From Dicyema japonicum (taxonomy: Eukaryota; Animalia; Dicyemida): a stretch of 64,000 bases of DNA. The notes beneath the pieces are model-generated. The model ran no database searches, had not been told where the DNA came from, and saw only the letters and a list, made by a program, of their open reading frames with translations. The stretch lies in NCBI GenBank assembly GCA_011109175.1, contig RDEW01000004.1, forward strand, positions 1,016,030 to 1,080,029. Reading direction: 5' to 3'. Each line of letters starts with the position of its first letter. Position 1 is the stretch's first letter. Below, piece by piece: positions 16,050 through 58,150 of the stretch. A program made the translations under genes and the position numbers.

Positions 16050-19000
16050 CATCACGTGTGGTCTTGTTGTGAATAATTGTATCATCATGGAGCGTCGTTC
16101 ATGCAATGGATCAACACACATTACACCCGAGAGACTGGACACTACATGCTCTACATGCGGTTTTGCCAATGCACGCAAATATGGACTTTTCTGCTCGTCT
16201 TGCCGTGACTTTTTCCACCTTGGATGCATAAAGATGTCTCAGCAGGCTGCGTGCTCGCTCTGCCTTTGGAACTGCAGTGTCTGCATGGGAACTGGTTAGA
16301 AAACCCAGAGGATCATTCCAAACGAGCACGTTGAACCAAACGAGCCTCTAGACTTCAATAATATGGACAACCTATTGCTCTTCTTGTCGGATCTAAGGAA
16401 AGCCAGGAAGATCCCAATCAAGAGCCCAAGACCCGTCCGGATCCCCGCGGCTACATGCCTGGCCTCTGCAATTGACGATGCTCTCACGTCCGACGACCTG
16501 GAGGCCTGGCTAAAACTCCTCAGTTTTGCTCCAATGGCCCTTGGAATTCCATTTATCGACTCAAAGAAGATCTACGGAATAGAGGAAAGCACGACACTTG
16601 GGAACTCCCTTTCTTCAAAAATGAAGAAGAACATCCAGGTTTTCTATGTGCTTTCTCTCACCAAGACGGAAGTCAAGAAATCAAGACATTCTGATTCCAA
16701 TCCTCCGGTTTATTTGAATGGCCCGGAAAAACTTAAAGAGAGAGTGAACCGCAAACTATTCGAAGGCGACGTCCGAGCGGCGTTGCGCGTCGTCGCCAGC
16801 GACGAAACTGTTATGGCTGCGACACCTGAGGTGCTAGAACTACTCAGACATAAACATCCATGTGCTCCGGAAGATTACCGCCCATTCGTGCTTCCGGGAA
16901 ATTTGTCAAGGATGACCGTCACCGAAGGCGAAGTGCGACGCGGCATTTCGTCCTTTGCGGCGAGTAGCAGTGGAGGTATCGATGGCTTGCGGCCGGGTCA
17001 CATCAAAGATCTTACGGCGGACGCTACTGCAGAAGCTGGCTGCAACCTTGTCAAATAAATTACAGAACTGGTTATGCGTATTTTGAACGGAGATATTCCT
17101 CCCCACGCAAGGGAGCTCCTTTTCAGTGCACATTTATTGGCCTTCAAAAAACCTGAAGGTGGGGTCCGCCCCATCGCAGTCGGCAACTATTTAAAAGATT
17201 GATAGCGAAAATCGCATGCAGCATTGTCTGTCCGAGAATATCTGAAGAATTTTCTTCCTCCAACTGGGGGTTGGTGTAAGGAACGGATGCGAGGCGGCAG
17301 TGCATGCTGCGAGGTGTTTTTTTGGACAGAAAGACGAACAAAACTCACATATTGGGGTCAAGCTGGACATCTGCAATGCCTTCAATTCATTGAGAGGGAT
17401 CAAATTTTCGAAACTACAAGCAAACTAGCCCCGGAACTTATTCCACTTGTCTTCCTCGCTTACGGAACCAATTCTTCACTGGTTTTCGACAAGATTATCT
17501 GTTCGGAGACCGGAGTTCAACAAGGGGACCCACTTGGTCCACTACTCTTCGCTCTGGACATCGATGAAATTTTCCGCTCTATAAACACACAACTTAACCT
17601 TTGGTATCTAGATGACGCCACAATTGGAGGGCCGTGGAGAAAAGTACACGATGTTCTGTCACATGCCGTGCCAGCACAACGAAACCTCGGACTTGAGATA
17701 AACATAAAGAAATCGGAGCTAATAAATATCACATACTCGGAGAGTGATTTCATCAACGTGGTCGAGTCTTTCAACTCGGTACTATTTGGAATTACTGTCG
17801 TACCCAGGGAGCGGACATACTTTCTTGGGTGCCCACTTGACGAAAAGGAACTGCGGAGCCATCTACAAACAAAAGAGGATGAACTCTCCAGAGTCACAGA
17901 GAAACTCTCCTTACTCGATGGTCGTACAGCGTTCCTCCTTTTGAAGATTATCATCGACTTGCCCAAACTCCTATATGCTCTCCGATGTTCTTCCTGCTTC
18001 AAACATCGTGACATCCTCCTGTCACTGGATAGGACATTGAGAAAATCAGCTGAATTGCTTCTAAACATCCACTTTGATGCGCCGAGTTGGAACAATGCAA
18101 GCTTCCTACACGCCTCGGAGGAACGGGTCTCAGGTCGGCGCTGGAGATCGCCTATCCAGCATATGTGTCATCGCTCTCAAGTGGAAGCCTTTTGGTCCAA
18201 GAAATCCTACGTATTACAACCGGACTCTCTTGGGAAAAAGCCTTCGACAAAGCTCGTTGCGAATGGTGTGAAACTGGTTTGGATATGCCGAACGATCTTT
18301 CGAGGCAACGTGACTGGGATGATATTTACTCCAAAAATATCTTCGACGTGCTAAAGTCTGAGGCCAACCAGCATCGTCTTGCATGCCTCGTGTCCGCCGC
18401 CAACCATGGGAGCGGAGCGTGGCTGGATGCACTCCCGTGTTCCTCCCTGGGGACCCTATTGGACGATGACTGTATTCGGATTGGAATCGCACAACGCCTG
18501 GGAGCTGATGTTTGCGTCGAACACTAATGTCGCTGTGGAGGGATCGTCGATGTCAAAGGGCTGCACCCGCTCTCGTGCAAAAGGAGTGCGGGCAGAGCAC
18601 CCCGCCATGCTGCTATGAACAACATTGTCTTGCAAGCTCTTGAAGCGGCAGGCTTCCCGGCAGTACTGGAACCTGTGGGATTGGACCGCGGAGATGGGAA
18701 AAGACCGGATGTGTTAACTCTCTTTCCGTTCACTGAGGGAAAATCGCTCTTATGAAACTGCACTGTTGTGGATTCTTTCTCGAACTCGATGATGCTCAGC
18801 TCGGCGCAGTCTGCTAGATCGGCAGCCGATCTGACCGAGAAAATCAAGATTAAAAAATATGGCGAAATTGGAGACCGCTACCGTTTTGTACCGGTAGCAA
18901 TCGAGACGTCTGGTGCGGCTGGAAGTATCACAGCCTCTTTCCTAAAGGAAATCGGGGGAAAATTGGCTCACCGCAAGAAAGACGTGCAAGAAGCGGTCTG

Positions 19001-19989: not shown

Positions 19990-22636
19990 ATACAATATTA
20001 TACAAAATGGATGGCTGACCGACTCTGGGCCATTTCCCTTGTGTACCATCTCTCCGTTAGTTTGAAGGTTATTTTCTGGGTTGCGGAGATTTTCTGGATG
20101 TTCGTATAAGAGGCCAGTGGTCCCATGAAGTACACGCATATGAAATGCATGGTTCGATGTACTGTGAGTAGAGCGTTTTAAGTATATGGTGATGTCCAAT
20201 TTTCCATAGACCTGTTAGGCATTTCAGAAGGTTGATTTTTTTCTCACATTTGTTCAGCACGTTAGTGACATGTCTCGAAAAGTTCATGTGCGTATCGAAA
20301 CTCAGACTCAATATTTTTGCCATTTGCTGAACGGCAATTCTCTTCTCTACGCAGTAACTTATATTGTCCTGTTCGACAATCTTTTGTCCGAGGTATAGAG
20401 TTGTAACAGATTTTTCTGTATTGATTGACATCCGATATTCACTAAACCATTCGAGTAGTCGATCCATGTGGTGTTGTATTTTTTCCGTCAGTGTTTGGGT
20501 GTTCTGATCCCGTGAGGCTAAGACTATATCGTCTGCATAAGTCACAAGCAGGTCGTCTTCTCCATTCGGCGTCGGAATGTCAGCCATAAACATGTTGAAT
20601 AGTAATAGTGATAGCGACAAGCCATGGGGTATTCCACTTTGGAATAAACGGGAGACAGAATGAATGTTTCCAATTCACACTCTACCTCTTCGTCCGCTAA
20701 GGAAATTCATCAGCCAGCTTTTGAGGTTTTCAGGGATATCTGATTGGTAAATTTTCCATGTTAGGTTCTTCCTCGGCACAGAGTCGAAAGCTTTGTGGAC
20801 GTCCAGTGAGCATAACACAGTTTTCTGGTGTTTTGGCTTGCACAGAAATCTAGAGCGAGTAAAGCTAGTCAGGGATGTGAGAAAGCTCGTTGTGGAACGA
20901 TCCTTTTTAAAACCATGCTGGAATGGTTTATCGGAAGTTCTTTCAGTGATTTTTGCGAGAAAAAGCTTTTCCAGAATTTCTGAAAGGGAGCATAAGAGAG
21001 AAATAGGCCTGAAGGAAGCTGGGTTTTTTTTCGGTTTTCCTGAATTCAATACTCGGTGAATGTTTGCAAGTTTCCACATCGTGGGATTGAGTTATAATTA
21101 ATCGACCAGTTATAGATTTTGGTCAGAGTACCAATTCCCTCATTTCCTATGTTTTTCAGGAGGATTATGGGAATTCCGTCTGGACCATGAGAATGTGTTA
21201 CTTTTGTTTGGTTTAGGGATGCCATTACCTCCTTTTCCGTGAAATAAGTTAATTGATCCCTTTTCGGTTTTCTTAGTGGCGGTTTGGGTGGGTCAGTTTT
21301 TATGAGAGATTTTATAGGACGTTTAGGTCCTTTTGGCAGAATTCGTCATTTCTGGGTGTCCTCTCATCCACCTTCGAGATATTTCGAATTGTCTTCCAGA
21401 CTTCGAATGTTGACCAGTTACGATTTAATGACGTAATGACCATCTTCCATTTAGCTCTCTGTATTTTGAATTCATTGGCTTTTATTTCCTCGTTCAGCAC
21501 TTTTAGACGGATCCTTGCTTCGGAGGAACGGATCCCTGCTTTTTTGAGACGGTTTCGTTCCTTGACCAGAGCTTTTTTCCGTACTCTCTCGTGTAAGCGA
21601 AATATTTTTTAGGGACAGCCATTGTTTTTGCTTCCAGGATGACTTTATTGACGTAGGCGACCACTATATCAAGGGAGGTAAAGTTTTCCAGCTGTTTGTT
21701 AGCCAAATGTTGGTAACTGATCGGAATAATTGCCAATTTGCAAGATTATATATGCAGGTTTCTTTTTCCACTGGTAATTTCGCTTTTGATTTGTAGCAGA
21801 ATAGGGTATGATCACTTCGGGTGTCGAGATGATGGACCAATTAATCGTTGTTGAAAGCTGTGGTAAACAGAGTGTGATATCTGGGGAGGTTGGATTGTCA
21901 GAGTTTCTTTGAGGTGTTCTTGTGTTTTTTGATGGGTCATTGATGATTGTCAGATTGCCAGGCTGCGTCAACAGCAAATTTCCTCTTGTACCTGCTGACT
22001 GATTTAAAAGCCAGAGAGGGTGTTTGGCATTCAAATCGCCGCATATCACGACTTCGTTCCAAATCTCCAGTGCTGATAATTCTGGCATAGTGTAATGTTT
22101 CGGGCATGAGCCCGGAGGCGGAATATACATGTTTACAAAATAGTCTTCCTTTTGTTGTGCCAACAGATATTCCGATTGTCTCTGTGGTTTCATCACTCCC
22201 CAAAAGTTTCTTCGCTCGAGTGTATGGTCCTCATACTTTATGCCTTTTCTGATTAATGTAAGTAGTCCTCCTCCACACTGCTTAGTGCGATTGGCACGTA
22301 TTATGTTGTATCCGGGAAAGAGGGGCGTAGTATCTTTTGCTGATAGCTTCGATTCTTGGATGAGCACGATGTCTGCTTTAAGTTTAACAATCAGAGTTCT
22401 AAGTTCAATCATTTTGCCTTTTATTCCGTTCACATTCAGTTGTATAACGGAGATCCGGTCCTTTGACTTGTGTAGGTTGCGAATCCGAGAAGCTGTAGCC
22501 AGACCAGTAATCCGTCGACCAGGGCGACATGTACCCCCGGTGGAAAAGAGCTAATGGCTCTTTTTGGAAATGCTTTAGGAGCATTTTGAGCGCCTCCAGA
22601 GTTGTTGCATCCGGTGAGCCACATGACGCCACGCTA
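19990..22636 (-). mobile_element. Vingi/Ingi-like LINE with intact 5' end (ribozyme-like head, APE, RT)
   Basis: QLNVNGIKGK, IQESKL, NMYIPP, CGDLNAKH, SPDITLC, FRPISLLC, QHGFK, SLDVHKAFDSV, TYADDI, EPCISYACTSW. Confidence 0.88.
22555..22630 (-). ncRNA. candidate HDV-like self-cleaving ribozyme
   Basis: P1 GGCGUC/GGCGCU (G.U first pair), P2 UGGCUC/GAGCCA, P3 CCGGA/UCUGG, P1.1 UG/CA, P4 AAAUGCU/AGCAUUU, C- and A-rich J4/2. Confidence 0.6.
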
Positions 22637-22664
22637 ATGTTAATAAAACTGAGTTTAAACGAGA

Positions 22665-24345
22665 AATAAGTTGAAGAATTTCGAAAGACAATCAGTGGAC
22701 GTAACTGATAGGATATCAAAACTGAATAAAGAAATCACGCGGAACATCACAAAACACAACAAAGAACGTTGTGAAGCCTTGCTCAGAAAAGCTACAAATA
22801 ATACTTCCTCCACTGTATTATGGAAGTCGATAAGGAGTCTCAAGAAGTACTCTCCAAATTCAATTGGACATGGAGAGCCATGCCCAAATGTGTAGTATGT
22901 GAATATTAGTCATAAACCATATTCAAAAGACCTGGATGTTCGTTCAGTCCATGATGGAAGGTATAAATGTCTAAACATGACTTTCTTAGATCCGTCAATG
23001 GTGCACTGTAATCAGGTAAATTAATAACTCGTCGTCCCGCGGTTCAGATAAATACTCCGTTCTCGAACTGAAACACTTGGGTCCTTCCGCGACACAAATT
23101 TTCAACGTCTCATTAAACGAGAACAAGATTATGTTAATATGGAAGAAATCTCTGATACACTCTATTCTGAAAAAAAACAAACCACCAAACTGCCCGTCCT
23201 CCTATTTCCTGGTATCCATCATCTGCACTATATCACAATTGTTAGAAAAACTGGTCCTTCTCAAGATCCGTCCTTTCATAACTATACCATCTTTTCTACA
23301 TAGATTCCGCGAAGGACACTCAAATGCCTTTGACTCAGTATTCCGGAAGATCCTTACAGCAAAAATTTTTACGACGTCGATTCACCCTATATTCAGGTCA
23401 TGGTTGGTTAACTTCATTAACGGTCAAATGGGCCAAGTGGTGGAGAACAACCAAAAATCAAAACTGCGATACCTTCCAAACGGAGTTCCACAAGGATCAC
23501 CGTTATCACCAATGCTCTTCAGCATGTTCCTCAATGACCTCACATCCCCAACCACCAAAAACACAATTCTCTTATCGTATGCGGATGATCTCATGGTCGC
23601 AGTGAAACATTTGAAGAATTGAGGAGGCGACACGGTCCGTGCAAGATCTAGTAAACCTGATGGGTTTTTGGTTCCTGAATGTATAACCAGGAACGTCACA
23701 TGTAATGACGTTTACCTAAAAGAAATACGGGCAACACACGAATAAAATTGTATGATTTCCCGCTTCCCATTAAGAAGACACTTTAAATCCTTGGAGTCAT
23801 CCTGGATCTTCTCCTCACATTCACTCATCAAGTGAACCAAGTAACTGCGAGGATCCAAAAGAAAATTCGAATTCTCAAGGCTTATACGCAGTCTCTAATA
23901 TCATCCATCGTTAGAGCTTCTATACAAACAATTTGTTCTACCTAGTATAAGCCTGCATGGATTGTCCCGATATCCTATCAGCACAGAGCAAGCTGGAAAA
24001 TTTACCAAATCGATGTCTCAGAATACTATTGAGATCGTCGAAAAAGACGTCCACCTCGTTACTTCGAGGAACACTAAACGTCCCCTCAATCATACCTTAC
24101 GGAACGTCACCGGGACTTCCTCAAGATGGCAGTCCCCTGACTATTTCCTAGGGCCGAAAATTAAACTATATATGGACGCCTGCCCCGAGATGAGAAGAAA
24201 CCTTCCCCTTGTGGAGATTAATCCAGGACTCCAAAACTAATCTCAGGAAAAGGACTGATATGGACACCGGATCACTTAATTAGACGATAACTTTTATCTT
24301 CTATCTCGTGAAGTCGGGTTAATAAAATAAAAATAAATAAAAAAC
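22665..24345 (+). mobile_element. Vingi-like LINE, 5'-truncated (linker, RT, 3' end)
   Basis: LNKEI..LWKSI, LLEKLVL, WLVNFING, GVPQGSPLSPMLF, SYADDL; ends CCGGATCACTTAATTAG plus A-rich tail. Confidence 0.85.
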
Positions 24346-31610: not shown

Positions 31611-31619
31611 GAGCTCCTA

Positions 31620-31860
31620 GACAGAATTTAACCACGTGGTTCTATGTGGATATTTGACTAAAGATTTCAGTTTATTTCTTATGTTCCCCTCTTCCCTTTC
31701 GATTAGAGTGGGGTCATGTGATCCACCCGTCTCAGGTGGCGTCCAGTGCCATGGTAGCACGAAAAAGGATCATTTTCTCTCTCTTACTCCACTGGAGGGG
31801 TTCAAATTCAAGGAATAGACTTCTACCTTTTATGTTGGTTCCGTTACTTGTGCGAAGTTG
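31620..31860 (+). repeat. short dispersed element containing the ribozyme-like fold
   Basis: Homologous over about 230 bp to 48180-48400 and in part to 56645-56760, 57285-57400, 46870-47250 and 2278-2360. Confidence 0.75.
31710..31772 (+). ncRNA. candidate HDV-like ribozyme
   Basis: P1 GGGGUC/GGCGUC (1 mismatch), P2 UGAUCC/GGAUCA, P3 ACC/GGU, P4 (G)UGC..GCA, then C-GAAAAA. Confidence 0.55.
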
Positions 31861-33117: not shown

Positions 33118-33368
33118 TCGTGGGAGGTGGAACATGAAGTAACAATGGACAATATCTCTTGGGAGGTGGAACATAAAATAACAATGAAAATATCTCTTGG
33201 GAGGTGGAACATGAAGTAACAATAGACAATATCTCTTGGGAGGTGGAACATAAAGTAACAATGGACAATATCTCTTGGGAGGTGGAACATAAAGTAACAA
33301 TGGACAATATCTCTTGGGAGGTGGAACATAAAGTAACAATGGACAATATCTCTTGGGAGTTGGAACAT
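33118..33368. repeat. 39-bp minisatellite, 6 full units plus a partial unit
   Basis: Unit TGGGAGGTGGAACATAAAGTAACAATGGACAATATCTCT; unit 2 is 38 bp. Confidence 0.95.
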
Positions 33369-33809: not shown

Positions 33810-34748
33810 TTAAATTTTCTCAAGATAATGAATTAATGACGTGATCCCATTAATGAAGTTGTCGTCTAATTCATTGGAGGGCAATGCATGGGCGAAATCA
33901 ATCATTTTTACGACAAACCCATCGTTGATCTCTTCAGAATTAGAGAAATCGTTTTCATAGATAATTAAAACTGAGCTAGCAATGAACCTCCAGTGTTTCT
34001 GAATTTTGAAAATTTGCAAAAGGTCTTTCAATTTTTTAATTACCGGCTGAAGAAACATCATCCCATTTTTGAAGAAAAGAGCAAGAGCTAAAATAAAGGG
34101 GACTTTCACCGTCAATTGTAGTTTCCGGGGTCAATTGCAAGCCATACTGCTTCCCATAAAAATCATAGACTCCATTGAGATACCCAACCTTAAAGTAAAG
34201 TCAAGATTTACCCGCATACCACAAATTCTGAATTGTATTTCTGAACAATATGGAAATTTTTTAAGTTTGCGTTCCTTAACATCTTCAGTCTCCCAAGTCA
34301 CGTATCCAATTTTTATATCAATTAATGATGGGGAATAAAATCCGAACGAGAGGTTTTCGAGACACAGATAATCTAGCAGTGTCACCCAAATTATCACATT
34401 CGTTAGAGTCGGAACAAGATAGAGTCCGGTAATAATCAGGGGAGAACTCATAGAGGGACGTTCAATGCTATCAGCTTTGGAACTGGAAATAGTTTTGTAG
34501 TATTTTTCCTCCCTGGATCCTCTTATATCGGTTTTAAGTTTTTTTAGGATTTTTTTATCCCCATAACTTAGAAATTCTTGTTTATATAGTTTTAGTAAAA
34601 TACCGTATTTTTCGCCCTTTGTGCTGATACCACCGACTTGATGAAAATATGGGGTCGTTTCGTTCAAAACAAAATCATCCTATTTTAATTAATTTAATTA
34701 TAAATAATATTTTTGTAAATAAATTAAAACATTATTTCCGTGTTCCAT
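33810..34748 (-). CDS. IPMK: inositol polyphosphate multikinase (IPK2/ArgRIII family), multi-exon
   Basis: HQVGG, RGSREEKYY, PSLIDIKIG (PxxxDxKxG), FRICGM, SSVLIIYE, VKMIDFAH, NFINGITSL; start codon inferred via a short first exon. Confidence 0.88.
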
Positions 34749-37299: not shown

Positions 37300-39500
37300 A
37301 AGTGTCCTGCCTATGCGGAGCTATAAATACTATGGCTCTCGTGAAAAGGCTTTAAAACAAAGCAAGAATTTAATATTTTTGTCGTATGTACGCACGTAAA
37401 GGAACGGATGGGGCAAATTTCTAAACTTTGCTTCCATACTCTTCGTGTACCTAATATTAAATGTTTAACTCTTTAAAAAAATTATTTAATTAATGTCTGG
37501 AAATTAATGTCGTCTACATTTTCAGTAAACAAAGCAAGAATTTAATATTATTGTCGTATGTACGCACGTAAAGGAACGGATGGGGCAAATTTCTAAACTT
37601 TGCTTCCATACTCTTCGTGTACCTAATATTAAATGTTTAACTCTTTAAAAAAATTATTTAATTAATGTCTGGAAATTAATGTCGTCTACATTTTCAGGTT
37701 CTATGGAATAAATCGGATAATTTTTCTCTACTACATAGTATTTCGCAGTATCCAAATCATCATATCCATTCTACAATTTTTAATTTATTTATTACCTCAA
37801 TACAACTTAATTTCAGATTTTGATATCGTTTTTGTCATATTTCCATATTCGCTTGGTTACCATTTTGTCACCAGCAATTATTAAATTCTTATACGTTTCG
37901 TCACGTGCATTTAATAATTTGTCGTCTTCACACAGCAAATCCCAGCGATTTCAGACTTCATTGCATCATATACAGTAGTGACATATTCATATGGGACAAA
38001 AAATTATATGGGACGGGACAAAATGCATAAATGGGACAATTTAACAAATCTATTAACAATTGTCAATATTTGCATTTTTTGTGGTCGGTTAGTACAAAAA
38101 GTTAGTACAAAACTCTAGTCGGTTAGTACAAAACTCAAAGTATTTTTTGTAGTAAATTTATATAAATTATTTAACAATTTAAAATTTTTTTTAACAATTA
38201 AACAAATGTCAGTTGAGGAAGCCTGCTGCGTGGATTGCGAACGAGTTCCCTCGGAGTATGGCTATTCCGATCTTTTGTCTTTGCCATTTTTAAATATATT
38301 TCTAATATATGAAACATTTTTTAAAGAATTAAATCAATATTTTTTTATTAACCTTATGACGTCAAACAAGAGAAATGAACTTGATTTTAATATCAAAAAC
38401 AAGAATGCTGAGGAAATCATGGAACAAAAAAGTTTTTATAAAATAATTTCCCAACGATATGGAACTAACAAAACAGTCGTGGGAAGAATAGCTAAGAATT
38501 TAGACAAATATACAAATTTCGATAACAGGCACCTTATCCGGACAAAAAATATTCTATGATTTGGTTTTTTGAACAAGTATTTGATTGGGGTCATTTCGAA
38601 ATTAAGATCGCAGAATGTGCCTCTCAGTTATTCTAACATTAAAGTACTCGCACTTCAATATGCGCAAGAACATGATGATAATTCATTCAAGGGTGGAAAA
38701 CAATGGTTTTCATCATTCAAATGTCATAATATGAAATATAAACAGTTATCTGGAGAAGCTGCAAGTGCTGATCATGAATCTGCATTCATATTTGCAGAAT
38801 CATTTTGTCTAAATCGTGCTTATTCTTCAGACAAGATTTATAACTGTGATTAAACATGCATTTATTTGAGAGGGCAATACAGCTATTCGTATGTACTACA
38901 GTCATCAAATGCAATTAAAAAAATAATTAAAAGTAAATACAAAGCTCAACTTTAACAGAATTAATCTTTGGGAATGTGAAGAAGTTAAATCTATAAAATT
39001 GATAGTATATTTTGGATTAAAGAAGCCGTAAAGTCAATTTATAAAGACACTAATTAATTGTTGGAAAAAAGCTGGTTTGTACTATGAAGAAGTAAATCTT
39101 GACAATATGGTGTTAGAAGATATTGAATTCAATGAACCTTTAGAAAATGAATCTGAAAATGTGAATGAATCAATAATTTTCAATCCCGAAATAACCTTTG
39201 AATAAAGGATTGACCAAAATGATAAACCGTTTTCATTGAAGATTTAAAAGAAATAAGCAAATAATTATATGGGACGATTATTTAAAATACCCCTTTTTTG
39301 TATAAACGTGTCACCACTGTAGTTTAGTTTTTAATTTAGACAAAAGACTACCAAAATGATTTAAATTGTTCTCACCCTAAAATTAATCTAATCGTTTTAA
39401 TTACTTTTATCGATTTGAGTTTCAACTCAATATCTTCAACACAAAAGAATCGTAACTTGCAGTCTTTATTTTTTAATGTTTTCTGAGGTTTCTTTGAAAT
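37300..39500 (-). CDS. unidentified multi-exon gene interrupted by the pogo element
   Basis: Exon-like stretches DCKLRFFCVEDIELKLKSIK / GENNLNHFGSLLSKLKTKL^YDAMKSE..WDLLCEDDKLLNARDETYKNL / NGYDDLDTAKYYVVEKNYPIYSIEPE / FRNLPHPFLYVRTYD. Confidence 0.45.
37355..37697. repeat. 172-bp tandem duplication near the gap
   Basis: 37355-37525 is nearly identical to 37527-37697. Confidence 0.9.
37973..39319 (+). mobile_element. pogo/Tigger-type DNA transposon (deleted and degenerate)
   Basis: TA|CAGTAGTGACATATTCATA ... TATAAACGTGTCACCACTG|TA (15/19 TIR match, TA TSD); CENP-B HTH-type GGKQWFSSFK, LSGEAASAD, IYNCD*. Confidence 0.85.
38187..38285 (-). mobile_element. about 100-bp CRE 3'-end insertion inside pogo
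   Basis: Identical to 49134-49225 over more than 85 bp, with poly-T tail. Confidence 0.85.
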
Positions 39501-41123: not shown

Positions 41124-43449
41124 TTAATATTTCTTTAATATGAACCCTTATCTGTTAATAGATGTGGAGCTTCAAATAGGCTATCTTCCAAGTTTTTTCG
41201 ATTTGAGCAGATTAGATCCTATGTGCATCAACACTTTCTTCCATTGTTCTTTTAGATTCCCATGTCTTCTGAGTCCTTCATGCTCACGAGAAGAAAGACA
41301 AGGGCTTCATTCCTATGACCTTAAATCTCCTAACAAATTAGAGTTGCTAAACGCGATTGAGTGGACATAACTGCCATTAAGTCTGAAAATCAATTACCGT
41401 TATAGTAGAAGAAATTAGTGGTTTAGAGTGGACAAACAAAATTTTCTCTTTGATAATAAGTAGATTCACTCATATGGCAAACAAGGTATGGAGTTTAAGT
41501 AAAAGAATTTGAAAAACTGGTATTTTCAGTACGAATAATTGTTAGTTAGTAACCCCGACCTTGCTACTTTTCAGGAGGCAGGCCATCCCGGGCGTCCAGT
41601 AGCTATTGATTGACAAGCAGGGACATGCCAAAGCTTTCATCTGCCAGGGGCGAGTGTATGATGATGGCCCTATAACAAACTAAAAAATAGGGAAAAAATA
41701 AATAAACTTGACAGGAGCTGATTTGATATCTAAAACCTCAAATAAGTTTGTATATGTTTAACTTTGAAAAAGAACGTTCACAACTAGCAGTTGAGTAGCC
41801 AAAGTCTTCAGCACTGTCAGTAGAACACGGTGATCTTGTCTATGTTGAAAAAACAGAGAGAAAAAAGTGAGCATAGTTATAATGTGAACTCTATAGCTTG
41901 GATCTGCTACCCCCAAAAGCGTGCTGCCCGGGACGGCTCCCCCTGTTGACAAGGACAGGACCCTCATCCAAGAAACCATGGAACAACAAGGGATCTTAAA
42001 AGCTGAGTTGCTGACCAGAATGTATTTGAGGGACAATGTGAAAGTTAATGACGTCAACACTGCCATTTCTGTCATCATCGGGCCAAATGTGTATGTGTGA
42101 GAGTTTGGAGATGGATATGGTGCCTGATTGCATGTGCCGCATGAATTTATGACTTAAAGAGTTTATACGCTTGACCCTGGGAAGAGCGAATCTCCAGGCA
42201 AAAAAATTAAATTATTTCCAAAGACTAAGGATAACCAAACTAACTAAATCCTCAATCCTGACTCGTTCCAGCATTTCAGAACTTGTCACCGAGTAACGAT
42301 GTTGTCCCCAGGGAAGAGTTATTGGATCCTCTTGATACCGGCTAGGCATTAGGCGCCTCCTCAGTAAGGTGGATCAAGTGACGCGATCAGAAGGAAGGAA
42401 AATAATTTTGACAAACTATCGACATAGCACCACGCAATAATTTTCAGAACAGGCATATTCAATTGTCGGCACAACCATTAGATGGAAAGGGGCTCTTCTT
42501 TATTATAGCATTTAGAACGTTCCACTTTCGAAGCCCCTTGGTTAACACTTCCTCCATGTGATCGGAGAACGTCATTAGAGTTAAATGTTACTTAAATATC
42601 TTCTGGTTTCGTGTAGAGGGAATAATAATATTTCCGACGAATACCTCGATTTTACTTTTAAATTTCTTGTCCGTATTGAATATTGTAAACTGAGACTAAG
42701 ATGAAGATACAAACAACAAATTCGTGGATAGCCAGTCACACACCTAGTTGAGTGTGTGGCTTGTCCACCGCCACTGCCCTGGAAGGAGATTTGTCCCCTA
42801 AGATAAAAACATAGTGTCCTGATTTTTGGTTAAGTCATGTATAAATGAGTTAAACACAATATATAAATGAGTTTTCACGATAGGGGAACTTAGTGGGACC
42901 CCATTTGGAGTAATTTTGATTTTGAAGTAGTTTTACTGATTCGGACTCTTCCACGTCGGATAGTTAAGAATTTATTTAGCCATATCATGATGTTCTGAGT
43001 AAAATTTGAATTAAAGATCTTGTTTGTTAAAAGTGTCCCCGAAACCTAGTTGAAGGCTTTCTGTATATCTATAGACACCAGAGCCATCAGTAATTGCGTC
43101 TTCATGTTGAAGCCGTCTGTGATGAACTGGGAGACAAATCCCAAATGAGTCGTTGTATAACGGCCTGATCTGAAGCCATGTTGAAAATCAGGAAATTGTA
43201 AAACAGGGGAGATTAACATTATTACAAGCTTCTCCAACACTTTCGACGAGGTTCAAGTTATGGCGGTAAGAGGATGGAATGTCTTTTGATTTTCCAGGCT
43301 TGAGGATTGGAGTAATCAATGAGTTCTTTCATATGTTTGGTATTGTATGGGAATTTATGGAATGGTTGTATAGTTTTGATAACACAATATGAGCCTGAGG
43401 TTATAGGTGTTTGAGGTGGATAGCACAGACACCGTCGGGGCCACAGGCT

Positions 43450-44310: not shown

Positions 44311-45053
44311 CAAAACCAATTTGCCTTCGAATAGTTCTTGAACTTTGTAGAACATTTTGGCAGACAAATAGATCTTTTGAGTTTCGACACAATTGGATTA
44401 TGGTCGCTTGTAAAACCATAACGAATATCCCATGAAAGATATCCAGCAATGGAGGGAGTGCATAATGACAAGTCTGGGGGAGTTGGACTTGTCATCTCTT
44501 CGGATTGGGGTCCTCGTATGGGAATCCGGATTTTTTAGAATAGTTAATTCGTCGAGTATAGGTACTCTCCGCGATTGTCGGCTGATTGTGTCCTGAGCCA
44601 CAGCGGATGTTTGGCACTTGAGTCTCCACATAGTAGCAGATCTTTTAGTTTACACAATCTCAATAGGTAGAAGATATAGGAAGTAGTACATGACCTCTGA
44701 GGTGGGATATAGAGATTGCACAGTGTAAAACATCTCGTCGGAGAAAAGGAAACTTCGATAGAAATCTGTTCCAGAATAAAATACCATTCGCAAAAAGAAG
44801 ATACAAAAGGGGTGACATCTGTAAATTTAAGTCTATCCTTAATAATAGTCAATAATCCTCCTCCGAGACTTCTTGTTAGGTCCCTGCGAATTACACAATA
44901 TCCAGGAAAACAAGGTGTTGGGGACTTTCTAGAGAGGTTCGATTTTTGAATGAGGGGAATTTCTACTTTCAAATGGGATAAGAGGGATCGTAGTTCCAAC
45001 ACTTTATTGCGGATTCCATTTACATTTAATTGTAGAATAATCAGTGTGTCATT

Positions 45054-45113
45054 GGGTCCCGGATTAGGTTCTACATCACCAGACAGAAGTAGTAAAGAGA
45101 AAATGGGGGAATT
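45054..45113 (-). other. 2A (stop-go) ribosomal skipping peptide
   Basis: NSPIFSLLLLSGDVEPNPG|P exactly matches the D(V/I)ExNPG|P consensus, in frame and directly upstream of the APE domain (ORF 44544-45161). Confidence 0.9.
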
Positions 45114-45147
45114 GGTAGGCCACCCGTAGAAGGGTAGGAAAAGTCGA

Positions 45148-45212
45148 CGGTTCTCTTCCATGAAGAACTTTCACTGAGCGCCAGCACAACAACAGGTGAA
45201 CCGCATGACGCA
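45148..45212 (-). ncRNA. candidate HDV-like ribozyme (probably mutated copy)
   Basis: P1 (U)GCGUC/GGCGC(U), P2 CGGUUC/GAACCG, P1.1 UG/CA, P4 (G)UGAA/UUCA(U); P3 weak and U at the predicted catalytic C. Confidence 0.5.
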
Positions 45213-46774: not shown

Positions 46775-46838
46775 GGTAACGTAGTGGTTAACTCTATCGC
46801 TGTGTCGCGATCAGTGTGGGTTCAATTCCCACATTTTT
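46775..46838 (+). pseudogene. tRNA-like sequence lacking an acceptor stem, followed by T5
   Basis: D arm TAAC/GTTA, ATCGC-TGTGTC-GCGAT arm, T arm GTGGG-TTCAATT-CCCAC, then TTTTT. Confidence 0.5.
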
Positions 46839-46869
46839 ACCTACTTGGTCGAAGTGTCCCTTTCTGATG

Positions 46870-47250
46870 TTCGCCTTCTTCAATTCCTAGGGAGGTTTAT
46901 GTGATCCACCTCAGTGCTTGACCGGAAAAATCCTTCTCTTAATTAGTCCAGTGGAGGGAGAGTCCCACTCCGACCATGGGAATTGGATTAAACCCCTTTC
47001 AGGCATATTCTGGGTTATTAAAAACGGAACGATGACGTTTTTTAAGAGAAAAACTAAATTTCACGGACCTCATGGTTTCTTTGCCAGCCATCTTCAAGTG
47101 GGACTCAGTGTGGTACGAAAAAGGATCATTTGCACTTCTTTACTCCACTGGAGGATTCCCACAACAAGAAGGACTGGACACTTTCGTTGGTTTTGAATGG
47201 AGGATTCTTTCTACCCTTTGTTTTCTTCCAACTGGTAAGAGCCACCTATC
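46870..47250 (+). repeat. two degenerate copies of the short ribozyme-like family
   Basis: ATGTGATCCACC at about 46898; GTACGAAAAAGGATCATTT...ACTCCACTGGAGG at about 47113-47156. Confidence 0.55.
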
Positions 47251-48090: not shown

Positions 48091-48179
48091 AGTTTATTAT
48101 TTGGTTTTAATAAATTATTTAAAATTAACAACAAAAAGTCAGGGACTCAAAAGAACGAACAGTCAAAAACACTTTCATC

Positions 48180-48400
48180 GACAGAATAAAAAATTCGCCA
48201 ACGTCGTGCTATGTGGCTAATTGGTTGAAGAAGTTCCTTCTCTTCATACTAGAGTGGCGTCATTTGATCTACCTGTCTCAGGTGACGTCTAGTGCCAGGG
48301 TGGCACGAAAAAGAATAATTTGCTCACCTCCATGCCACTGAAGAATTACAAAACTGCAAGGAATGGACGTCTTTTACCTTTTATGCTAGTTCTGGCGCCA
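48180..48400 (+). repeat. short ribozyme-like element; fold at 48256-48318
   Basis: P1 GGCGUC/GACGUC, P3 ACC/GGU, P4 GUGCCA/UGGCAC fully paired; P2 3' strand degenerate. Confidence 0.7.
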
Positions 48401-49113: not shown

Positions 49114-49732
49114 TTTTTTATTAACAAAATTTTTTTTAACAATTAAACAAATGTCAGTTGAGGAAGCCTGCTGCGTGGATTGCGAACGAGTTCCCTCGGA
49201 GTATGGCTATTCCGATCTTTTGTCTTAGCCATAACCCTTCTCGTTGATCCCTTTTCTTTCTGGCAAGCAATCCTCCGAGTTCTTGCAAGAATTCAGCCGT
49301 CATTGGACCAACGGCTCCCGATGATTCGGTCGCAACAGGAGTAAATCGGTAGCGATCCCGAGGCAAGAATATTTCTTGATTTTTAGGTTTTCCGCGGTCA
49401 AAGCAGCTGCTCCCGGTGTCTGAACAGATTTAAAAATGTTCGTTCTTGAGAACGTGTCTATGCAAGTTGCGTCCCAGACCAAAGATCTTCCAGACGTGAA
49501 GGAGAAAAGGGTCATCCCGTCAGGTCTCTTCCCATCTCCTCGATCAAGACCCACTGGTTCAAGCTGTGCTGGGAAGCCTGAAGCTTCAGAGCTCTGACGA
49601 TCACATCATTCAGAGCGGCATGACGTGGTCCCCTTCCGGCGCTTCTTCTGCAGGACAGCGGGTGCAATCCTTTCGCATCGACTGTTTTCCCGCATCGGCA
49701 TCGTGGCTCCTGGCAAACGTCTAGTCCCAGCC
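49114..49732 (-). mobile_element. 5'-truncated CRE-like copy with 12-bp TSD
   Basis: [38 protein letters not shown]; TTTGTTTTTATT at 49102-49113 and 49733-49744. Confidence 0.9.
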
Positions 49733-49832: not shown

Positions 49833-49930
49833 AGCTAAGACAAAAGATCGGAATAGCCATACTCCGAGGGAACTCGTTCGCAATCCACGCAGCAGGCTTC
49901 CTCAACTGACATTTGTTTAATTGTTAAAAA
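49833..49930 (+). mobile_element. 97-bp CRE 3' end, inverted relative to 49134-49229
   Basis: Perfect reverse complement. Confidence 0.85.
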
Positions 49931-51361
49931 AAAATAAAATAACTTTCCAATTTAATATTATACCAATTTCCTTTCTATTTTGTTCAATTGGTTCATATGA
50001 TGTAAATTGTGAGATTTGGAGCCATTTTATCACCCTGAGGAATAAAAAAATATTGTAATTTTGTTTTTAAGAAACTTATATAGATGTTATGCTCATATAG
50101 GATATCTCTACAGATTGTATATTTGTTTTACTAAGAGTATTTAATTCTCAGACGACAATACGTAACTTTCTTGTCAAACCAAATAGTTTTTACATGCGGT
50201 AGTTAGGGGTAAAAATACTGCTAGAGTCTACATTTGCAGTGAGATTACTAAATTGTATAATCAGTCTTGATTACTATTTTTTACCACATCATTTCAATTT
50301 TAACTGACTTGTCGCAACCACGAAAACCACCTCCTCTCATACACCGACGCTTTAGATTATTGAGACAAGAAATACTGAATACTCAAATGATTTTCCCAAT
50401 TTGGAAACGGAATTTTTCCGGCATATTTCTTCGCAACCCAATTTACTATATGCAAGAAATACTCGTTCATTTAGGGGACTCATATTTTACCAAAATTTCA
50501 GAGACATGTAAAAAACCGGGCGATAGCTGAACAGTTCTAAAGATCATCTTAATAAATCTCATAAGCAATACTGAGTACCCTCTACAAGTAGAAGTCAGAT
50601 GAGCTTATAAAGATGTCATAGAAGTCACACATATTAATATTGTTGTCTTGATAGTAAGACATTACAGTCCATTTCTAGTTGTCTGTGATTTTCTGTTTAA
50701 TTCACCCAAAGTCCCTTCACTTAAGGGAACTGGTGGTTTAATAAAGCGACTGTCGAGACGGGATAAAACAGGTGATGAGTATTTTATAAATATTGGCAGT
50801 TATTTACCGATCGACCATATTTTATGGTCATTTTTTCTTATCGGGAAGCGACTGTGGTTTTGCTGACAGCCTTTGGAATGGCCATTATCTCTGTTGTCTT
50901 AGGAATTTCCAATTTAGCTCTAACTAATACAATTCACTGACTGGAAGATCCTTATCTGAAAACATAATGAAAAAAACTAGAAAATCTCGATTAGTTAGTA
51001 AACTTTGTGATAGACAAGCAAAGGGAGTGGACGTATTCATCTCTAAATACCACTATACGGCATTCAAACTCAAGAGACTTCAGTTCTCAGTCTCGGAAGT
51101 TCTCAGTCACTTTTTTTATAAATAAATTAAAGTGATGGATCCTAATTTAGGGTAGTCTATGTAGGTTCAGTCTCTATAGGAGAGACGGACAAGACAGAGA
51201 TGTAATTCAATGATTAGAAGCAATAGCTGTGAGCATAGAAAACTAGTTATTTATAAAATGCGTTGAAATCGCCGTGACGTTCACGTGACAATTTATTTAT
51301 ATGATCCTAATTCGTTAAAGCTTAATGCTCGTAAAGGTTTCTGGGTTGAACAAAAATGTAG

Positions 51362-56560: not shown

Positions 56561-56644
56561 TTTCTAATAAAAATGACATTTAACGTAAAAATATTATGTA
56601 AATAAAAAGTTATAGAGATAAAAAAAGTCAAAAATTTGTAAAAT

Positions 56645-56760
56645 TTTTCGCCACGTGGTACTACGTGGCTAGTTGATCGAACTTTTATGTTTGTTTTGTC
56701 TATTCCTCCTCCCATTGTTACTAGAGTGGCATCATGTGATCCACCTGTCTAGGTGGCTTA
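56645..56760 (+). repeat. truncated copy of the short ribozyme-like family
   Basis: CCACGTGGTACTACGTGGCTAG...TAGAGTGGCATCATGTGATCCACCTGTCTAGGTGGC. Confidence 0.7.
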
Positions 56761-56799: not shown

Positions 56800-58150
56800 A
56801 AACAGGGACCCCAATCAGGAAAAGAATAGTTCATAGTTGTTCTGATAAATTGTTTGTAAATAGTGATCAAGCTCTCTTTGTTCTAACCAAATGACGTACC
56901 CGCCACGGCCCGGAGTACGTTGAGCTTATTCTCCCGTAGTCCTTTAAGTTTTTCCCCTTTCTGAAACGCCTTTTAGTTTTTTCGAGATTCCAGCCAAGGA
57001 CCTTGTCGTCCATGGAATCGGGGATTGTCGAATGAAATGTCCTACTTTGTCACGTTATCCTTAATACATGTTCAAATTACTATACCGAGGATCCTTGGTA
57101 TCAATCGAGATTGGCTAGCAGCTTATCTTCTCAGTCACAGTTCTAATGTTTGTTAGTAATAATCTATTAATGAGACAAGTTAAACGACTAATTAAATGTA
57201 TACAGTTCACACCCTCCACGTAGTTTTTCAATATCACACTAGTCCATCAACAATTAATTGAAGGGAGAAAGTTCTTGCAGTGTGCTCCTCTAGTGGAGTG
57301 GGAAGAGAAAATGATTATTTTCGTACAAACCAGACACTGGGGGCCACTTAAGAAAAATGGATCACGATGTAACTCTAGATGAAAGGGAAGGCAGTGAATT
57401 TAGTTATTTAGCCTGACTTAACTAACTTTTAGGATGCCACAAGTCTCTGATAGTCAGTGGAGGGCCTGAATGGATAAATCCTAACAAATAATCATCAATC
57501 GGTGGTCCAGAAAAGGTAGTCAAAAGTCCGATTTGTCTGAAGAAAAAGTGCTCTGAACGGAGTTGAGTTAAAATCCTCCTTGTCTCTCCGTCGAGCTAAA
57601 GCCTTCGGATAGCCTTTTTTGATATGTGATCATAATTTTTGTCTTGGATTTTTCGTGAGGTGGGTATGGGACTAATTGCCGATACGACTAAAATGACCTT
57701 TCTGATATTTTTGAAAAAGTCAGAGTTGCGAGAGTGACCTAGTTTCATTAAAAAATTTAGATTCTTCATGCATAGATGGTTCTCAAGTTGGGGAATGATG
57801 GATTCCCAGTGGAAATGGTCATGGATGCGCATGCTGTATTCGACTGCAATAGATGCCCCAAAGGGGCTTGCATAGTTCAAGGTGGTCCTGTTGAATCGTT
57901 TATAGATTACTTTCGGAGTTTCATTGTCTTGGCCGAAATTAGCTTCAGTCACAGCGCAGAGAACGTTCTATTTCCTTTGCATTTTCGACCACGTGGTCTA
58001 CATGGAAAAAAATGTCAGGCAAAGATTTTCGGGGTTTGAGACTGGAAGAACTTTACTGATAAATTTAAAACACCAGGTTTAATATTCAGTTGAGGCGGGT
58101 CGGAGGTGAAAATCGTGAAATTGGGTATGGAAAAGGAATGAGTGAAATGG
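56800..58150 (-). mobile_element. divergent Vingi-like C-terminal fragments (about 56800-57050 and 57450-58150)
   Basis: KLNVLRAVAGTSFG; ANFGQDNETPKVIYKRFNRTTLNYASP. Confidence 0.65.
57285..57400 (-). repeat. degenerate copy of the short ribozyme-like family
   Basis: Reverse complement CTTCCCTTTCATCTAGAG..GTGATCC..GTACGAAAATAATCATTTTCTC..ACTCCACT. Confidence 0.6.

Follow-up and report, generated by a model that had tools for sequence, protein, structure and literature searches.

A candidate HDV-like ribozyme module of 2A-bearing LINEs and their short derivatives in Dicyema japonicum

HDV-like ribozymes have been described in R2, RTE, other LINEs and L1Tc (PMC3185411, PMC4035085, PMC7761336), and the HDV-like fold has been defined, with its spacer shown to be necessary (PMC4908430). 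The ribozymes of R2, RTE and other LINEs cut at the first nucleotide of P1 and were proposed to act in 5′ processing and translation initiation (PMC4908430, PMC3774820, PMC7761336). L1Tc carries an HDV-like ribozyme plus a 2A (PMC3185411, PMC3708506), and a survey that catalogued 2A sequences in animal LINEs, among them those of molluscs, left ribozymes unmentioned (PMC3708506). With HDV-like ribozymes in LINEs established, another family would be unsurprising. Here we analyse an RNA motif of ~65-75 nt that is repeated within a 64-kb stretch of DNA (the window), where it lies 5′ of a LINE encoding 2A, endonuclease (APE) and reverse transcriptase (RT) and in short non-coding derivatives. With a probability of about 0.5, we read it as an HDV-like (nested double-pseudoknot) ribozyme module of single-ORF 2A-APE-RT LINEs and of the short non-coding elements sharing their 5′ region, one that would self-cleave 5′ of P1. 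An earlier note had called the motif undescribed, which holds only as far as the searchable literature goes; a full-text literature search for HDV-like ribozymes in octopus found none.

Copies of the motif and the elements that carry them

Five full copies (first bases 22630−, 31710+, 42385−, 45212− and 48256+) and four decayed ones (fragments at 56728, 46893, 47100 and 57371) lie in the window, and decay is seen in all of them (Table 1). Direct reading of 22630-22555 (−), 45212-45148 (−) and 31710-31772 finds the motif at the places and on the strands reported earlier. Copy A (22630-22555, −) reads GGCGUC AUG UGGCUC ACC (15-nt L3) GGA GGCGCU CA AAAUGCU CCUAA AGCAUUU CCAAAAA GAGCCA. A sixth complete copy, outside the window, was reached through the closest protein relative (P0002) and belongs to Octopus sinensis (locus L012). 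In DNA contigs of the same organism as the window, taken from four DNA-like runs of one sample, the depth over these copies is 60-370x the single-copy level, an abundance that would make covariation and RNA-end tests easy given the whole assembly and RNA.

Table 1. Coordinates of the motif copies, their predicted parts, leaders and coding regions in the window
Feature	Coordinates	Strand	Remarks
Copy A	22555-22630	−	sole window copy passing the strict descriptor
Copy A, P1	22630-22625	−	
Copy A, J1/2 (AUG)	22624-22622	−	
Copy A, P2	22621-22616	−	
Copy A, P3	22615-22613	−	
Copy A, L3	22612-22598	−	
Copy A, P3′	22597-22595	−	
Copy A, P1′	22594-22589	−	
Copy A, CA	22588-22587	−	
Copy A, P4	22586-22580 / 22574-22568	−	
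Copy A, J4/2	22567-22561	−	candidate catalytic C at 22567
Copy A, P2′	22560-22555	−	
Leader of copy A	22631-22730	−	like the leader of O. sinensis L012 (-53 to -12, p ~0.005)
Broken LINE body behind copy A	20069-22433	−	APE 22433-21699; RT pieces 21079-20675 and 20620-20069
Copy B1	31710-31772	+	short ORF-less element (AUG, then directly UGA); candidate catalytic C 31760
B-family leader	31617-31709	+	homologous blocks 56629-56727 (+), 48164-48255 (+), 42386-42459 (−)
Copy B2	48256-48318	+	P1 GGCGUC/GACGUC, P4 GUGCCA/UGGCAC, P2 decayed; candidate catalytic C 48306
Copy B3	42323-42385	−	first base C; 1-nt indel in P2′; L3 UUACUGA; candidate catalytic C 42334
Decayed B copy	56728-56760	+	5′ part only
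Decayed B copy	46893-46935	+	internal deletion
Decayed B copy	47100-47131	+	3′ part (P4 3′ strand, CGAAAAA, GGAUCA)
Decayed B copy	57300-57383	−	found only by a covariance model built from the copies themselves, 37.3 bits, E = 4e-6
Copy C	45148-45212	−	first base U
205-aa ORF behind copy C	44544-45161	−	2A motif GDVEPNPGP at 45080-45054, then APE start

The placement of the motif in a LINE 5′ region is borne out by the coding sequences downstream. The broken body behind copy A matches the Pfam domains Exo_endo_phos (1.8e-9) and RVT_1 (8e-13 and 4e-11). Behind copy C the 2A stands immediately 5′ of the APE start, and copy A has no recognisable 2A. The B copies (B1, B2, B3 and the fragments) contain no ORF, their AUG being followed by UGA or absent (AUU in B2, ACU in B3), and have only ~230 nt in common.

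In the LINE copies, an AUG occupies +7 to +9, that is, J1/2. The annotated start of P0002 in the octopus locus is this very codon, and its frame runs through the motif into the 2A. The AUG of copy C (45206-45204) is in frame with the 205-aa ORF, with one UGA between them, and that of copy A opens ~70 codons free of stops. Such a start codon inside J1/2 would give the 2A a simple purpose.

Several other features of the neighbourhood were recorded. RT fragments of other LINEs lie on the opposite strand beside the element of copy A (23077-23622, +, and 17224-18354, +). At 42459-42520, copy B3 with its leader begins at most ~100 nt from the apparent end of the repeated LINE body of copy C, and one may have inserted into the other or next to it. 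The window also holds a tandem array with a period of ~39 nt (33192-33368, from staggered self-hits) and a ~100-nt repeat in three copies that are 99-100% identical (38181-38287, ~49126-49232 and, inverted, 49834-49933) and far younger than the ribozyme copies. An ORF at 34131-34667 (−) with an inositol polyphosphate kinase domain (Pfam IPK, 3e-7) is probably a host exon.

Helices, joiners and loops of the predicted fold

In an alignment of six decayed sequences (A2: the five full window copies and the octopus copy, with P1, P2 and P3 written as a pseudoknot), the strand order P1-P2-P3-P3′-P1′-P4-P4′-P2′ of a nested double pseudoknot can be written in every copy. The cells of P1, P2 and P3 pair in 86.7% of cases, compared with 33-50% when the partners are slid by 1-3 columns. 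Furthermore, a degenerate 17-nt pattern of the 5′ part of the motif has seven matches in the window, against 0.36 expected. P2 is changed on both sides at four of its six pairs (UGGCUC, UGGUUC, CGGUUC and UGAUCC, each with its complement), and P4 is a distinct 4-7-bp hairpin in each copy. The HDV-like helix order claimed in the earlier note is thus supported, with compensatory change in P2 and P4. Its P2 pairs are all correct (UGGCUC/GAGCCA, CGGUUC/GAACCG at 45212-45148, −, and UGAUCC/GGAUCA at 31710-31772). Of the P4 sequences that it quoted, GUGCCA/UGGCAC belongs to a fourth copy (B2), B1 having only GUGC/GCAC. Similarly, its P1 of GGCGUC with GGCGCU is that of copy A, but B1 has GGGGUC (one mismatch) and copy C starts with U (U.U); the quoted partner GACGUC exists, specifically as P1′ of B2.

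A C opening J4/2, in the context C-N-R-A, is the catalytic-C context of HDV-like ribozymes. J4/2 opens with C in five of the six copies (CCAA, CUAA, CGAA, CGAA and CAAG; that is, C-N-A-A in four and C-A-A-G in B3), a count that requires the last C of the P4 drawn earlier to be left unpaired; the candidate catalytic C is best placed at the base of that P4, and the predicted fold is then closer to the canonical one than had been thought. The corresponding position of copy C is U (45160), which lies within the ATG opening the 2A ORF and with the next G reads TG, and this looks like CpG decay.

L3 of HDV holds the U20.G25 partners plus a P1.1 of 1-2 bp. In the motif, L3 reads UGUCUCA, CGUCUCA, UUUUCU or longer, is without the usual C-G and has a G at its position 6 in B3 only, so the reported lack of an obvious U20.G25 pair is real: the G is truly missing. 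P1.1 (UG with CA) amounts to 1-2 weak pairs, possible in some copies, and shows no covariation that would support or exclude it. In HDV-like ribozymes the cut lies at the first base of P1, usually a G in a G.U or G-C pair. Three of the six copies have such a first pair, and in the other three it is mismatched (C.C, C.C or U.U); all six have a paired G at position 2.

Folds upstream of 2A in related LINEs

A HMMER search with the 205-aa ORF gave 1388 matches, and 89 of the best 151 have an N-terminal 2A. Nine 2A-bearing relative loci were fetched from a sand fly, other NCBI assemblies, Logan runs and metagenomes. Three of them (L014, L026 and L027) pass the strict HDV descriptor at most 330 nt upstream of the 2A, compared with 0-4% of shuffles. 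Another four (L025, L028, L029 and L030) have complete helices by eye and fail that descriptor only on a 2-nt J2/3 or a non-G first base, whereas L013 has no fold upstream of its 2A and L031 only a doubtful one. In five relatives L3 is U-N-U-N-C-G-Y, a sequence that formed no part of the descriptor. LINEs of distant animals combine HDV-like folds with an N-terminal 2A, and a fold of this type 5′ of the 2A seems to be a trait of this LINE group. A word-indexed protein search added one distant match, without DNA, and with P0002 as the query it returned P0002 only; pattern scans of viral and metagenome contigs gave only GC-rich chance matches.

The window family resembles the relatives with folds (L014 and L025-L030) in its ORF type (2A, then APE-RT), its place upstream of the 2A, its helix lengths and its C-(N)-A-A J4/2. 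Two features that had been taken as non-canonical recur in the related LINEs, a 6-bp P1 (6-7 bp there) and a long A-rich J4/2 (6-7 nt here, 5-7 nt and of the same C-(N)-A-A type there). The relatives differ from the window family in their U-N-U-N-C-G-Y L3 and in a J1/2 of 2-4 nt without AUG. In these loci 40-60 nt separate the end of the predicted ribozyme from a U-tract and hairpin, which in the window family abut P2′.

In L013 and L025-L031, this U-tract (CGUUUUUUC, read as V-F-S) and the hairpin after it stand between ribozyme and 2A, and the hairpin differs in sequence at each locus and covaries. The similar segment of the window, AUUUKCUC plus a small hairpin, is at 22554-22500 (−) and 31773-31800 (+).

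The leader, competing readings and known systems

Upstream of G1, every copy of families A and B carries a conserved leader of 55-100 nt, as most genomic paralogs do. The motif is therefore not the 5′ terminus of the DNA in two of the three families, contrary to what had been proposed. The four B copies are alike for ~80 nt upstream of the ribozyme (pairwise p ~0), and a leader HMM (nhmmer) matches beside ribozyme copies only. At the loose ends of paralog contigs the same leader continues and then gives way to unrelated AT-rich sequence; among the best-supported of these ends, there is no pile of copy ends at G1. Similarity of leaders between the families, or with those of the relatives, is not significant. 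Family C has no demonstrable leader, and the alignment with one paralog contig stops precisely at 45211, suggesting that this family may start at the ribozyme.

Several origins of the leader were considered and rejected. For a tandem or circular origin, the upstream and downstream sequences are dissimilar; an independent target repeat is contradicted by the HMM matches beside ribozymes only; ARAGORN calls no tRNA, the A-box likeness being by eye only; and a true P1 at the 5′ end of the leader with a giant J1/2 would need a segment that is absent from the window copies. An 11-nt target-site-duplication candidate for copy A was also set aside, being tailless and falling within another LINE. The segment at ~46825-46845 (+), which immediately precedes the decayed copy 46893, reads GTGGGTTCAATTCCCAC, a hairpin like a tRNA T-arm, where ARAGORN calls no tRNA. 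In the sand-fly relative L025, TGGCTTAGTGG within the 45 nt 5′ of the predicted ribozyme (~452-496) agrees perfectly with what we take as the pol III A-box consensus, and the B leader contains TGGCTAGTTGG; by HMM, the similarity is not significant.

For the ribozyme module, we envisage that P1 (GGCGUC with GGCGYY), P2, P3 and P4 would fold after transcription, that the C opening J4/2 (C-N-A-A) would act as general acid, and that the RNA would cut itself just 5′ of P1, leaving a product whose 5′-OH start lies inside a compact fold. Translation could then begin at the J1/2 AUG, in frame with the 2A-APE ORF, so that the ribozyme itself would be translated and the 2A would shed the ribozyme-encoded leader peptide from the enzyme. 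The motif is probably an HDV-like ribozyme, judging from the excess of pattern matches, the slid-partner control, the covariation of P2 and P4, the J4/2 C, the LINE context and the folds of the relatives. This reading is weakened by the retained leader, the mismatched first P1 pair, the lack of double changes in P1 and P3, the L3 without C-G, the weak P1.1, the decay of all window copies and, to a small degree, the lack of an Rfam match. In particular, an inherited leader 5′ of the proposed cut is at odds with the usual 5′-processing model and disfavours efficient cleavage of the RNA that is copied, since the leader would be lost. Three readings of the leader remain: the template may be an uncleaved RNA and the message a cleaved one, cleavage may be weak, or the fold may do something else. 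Extending the first, we tentatively suggest that in animal 2A-LINEs the HDV-like fold might serve less to define the 5′ end of the element than to make, or to be, the 5′ end of a message that lacks a cap and opens with codons of the ribozyme itself, that the widespread N-terminal 2A might discard the resulting peptide, and that the leader-bearing uncleaved RNA might be the template and the cleaved RNA the message; we consider this speculative scheme unlikely as a whole.

The motif may instead descend from an HDV-like ribozyme whose cleavage was lost or became weak and now serve as a structural element of the 5′ region, perhaps in cap-less translation start or RNP assembly, with the full leader-bearing RNA as template. 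We regard this as doubtful. That the A and B copies all retain the leader, as paralog contigs do, and that the best-supported loose ends do not pile up at G1, is what it would lead one to expect, and the L3 without the C-G that related LINEs keep and the often mismatched first P1 pair point the same way; furthermore, compensation maintains the fold in the non-coding B elements, which argues for a role beyond coding. However, the J4/2 C-N-A-A, relevant to catalysis alone, is kept in five of six copies, and the possible start of family C at the ribozyme, with the contig departing at 45211, speaks against lost cleavage.

Slightly less probable, in our view, is a conserved 5′-UTR structure that is unrelated to HDV-like ribozymes and has no pseudoknot, in which P2 closes the P3 hairpin, P4 forms a second hairpin and the complementarity of P1 is incidental, or a part of an internal promoter acting at the DNA level. 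Covariation is indeed confined to the nested helices P2 and P4; in the six sequences P1 and P3 are conserved and complementary, with one-sided changes only, so that covariation speaks neither for nor against the pseudoknot. A generic strict descriptor finds two sites in the window (one of them 22630), against ~0.55 in each shuffled window, so the fit of a single locus is not significant and support comes from the family. Comparison with the Rfam HDV-like models returned nothing for the window motif at the gathering threshold or at E <= 10, as a plain 5′-UTR structure would predict; however, canonical-looking relatives of the 2A-LINE are also without a match, so that a blank for the window says little. 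An internal promoter would be expected in a 5′ region common to LINEs and their deletion derivatives. Against this, chance would hardly set two conserved complementary 6-mers at the pseudoknot positions alongside a C-N-A-A joiner and a P3 of 3 bp, the one-sided changes of P1 (G-C to G-U and U-G to U-A) preserve its pairing, and at the corresponding position related LINEs carry folds of the textbook HDV-like type. Finally, chance resemblance within an ordinary repeat is very improbable: relaxed descriptors do match 44% of shuffled regions, but conservation at the family level, compensation in P2 and P4 and the slid-partner controls already disfavour it.

Among the closest known systems is L1TcRz/Pr77 of L1Tc, NARTc and the ingi clade (Trypanosoma), which likewise places an HDV-like fold 5′ in a single-ORF APE-RT LINE opening with a 2A, and in which the 5′ module is also common to the LINE and its short non-autonomous derivatives (PMC3185411, PMC4035085, PMC3708506). 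The parallel with L1Tc/ingi drawn in the earlier note is thereby supported. The two have no sequence similarity, and the window host is an animal. Moreover, L1TcRz comprises nucleotides 1-77 and cuts at +1, whereas in two window families the proposed cut is preceded by an inherited leader of 55-100 nt. The nested double pseudoknot is also that of the ribozymes of R2, RTE and other LINEs, including drz-Agam-2 (PMC4908430, PMC3774820, PMC7761336), and the lengths of J1/2 (3 nt), P3 (3 bp) and the L3 of the B copies (7 nt) fit known HDV-like ribozymes (PMC4908430). Unlike the R2, RTE and drz-Agam-2 type, the window motif is without a match to the Rfam HDV family and without the L3 C-G, and it has a start codon inside J1/2, followed downstream by a 2A.
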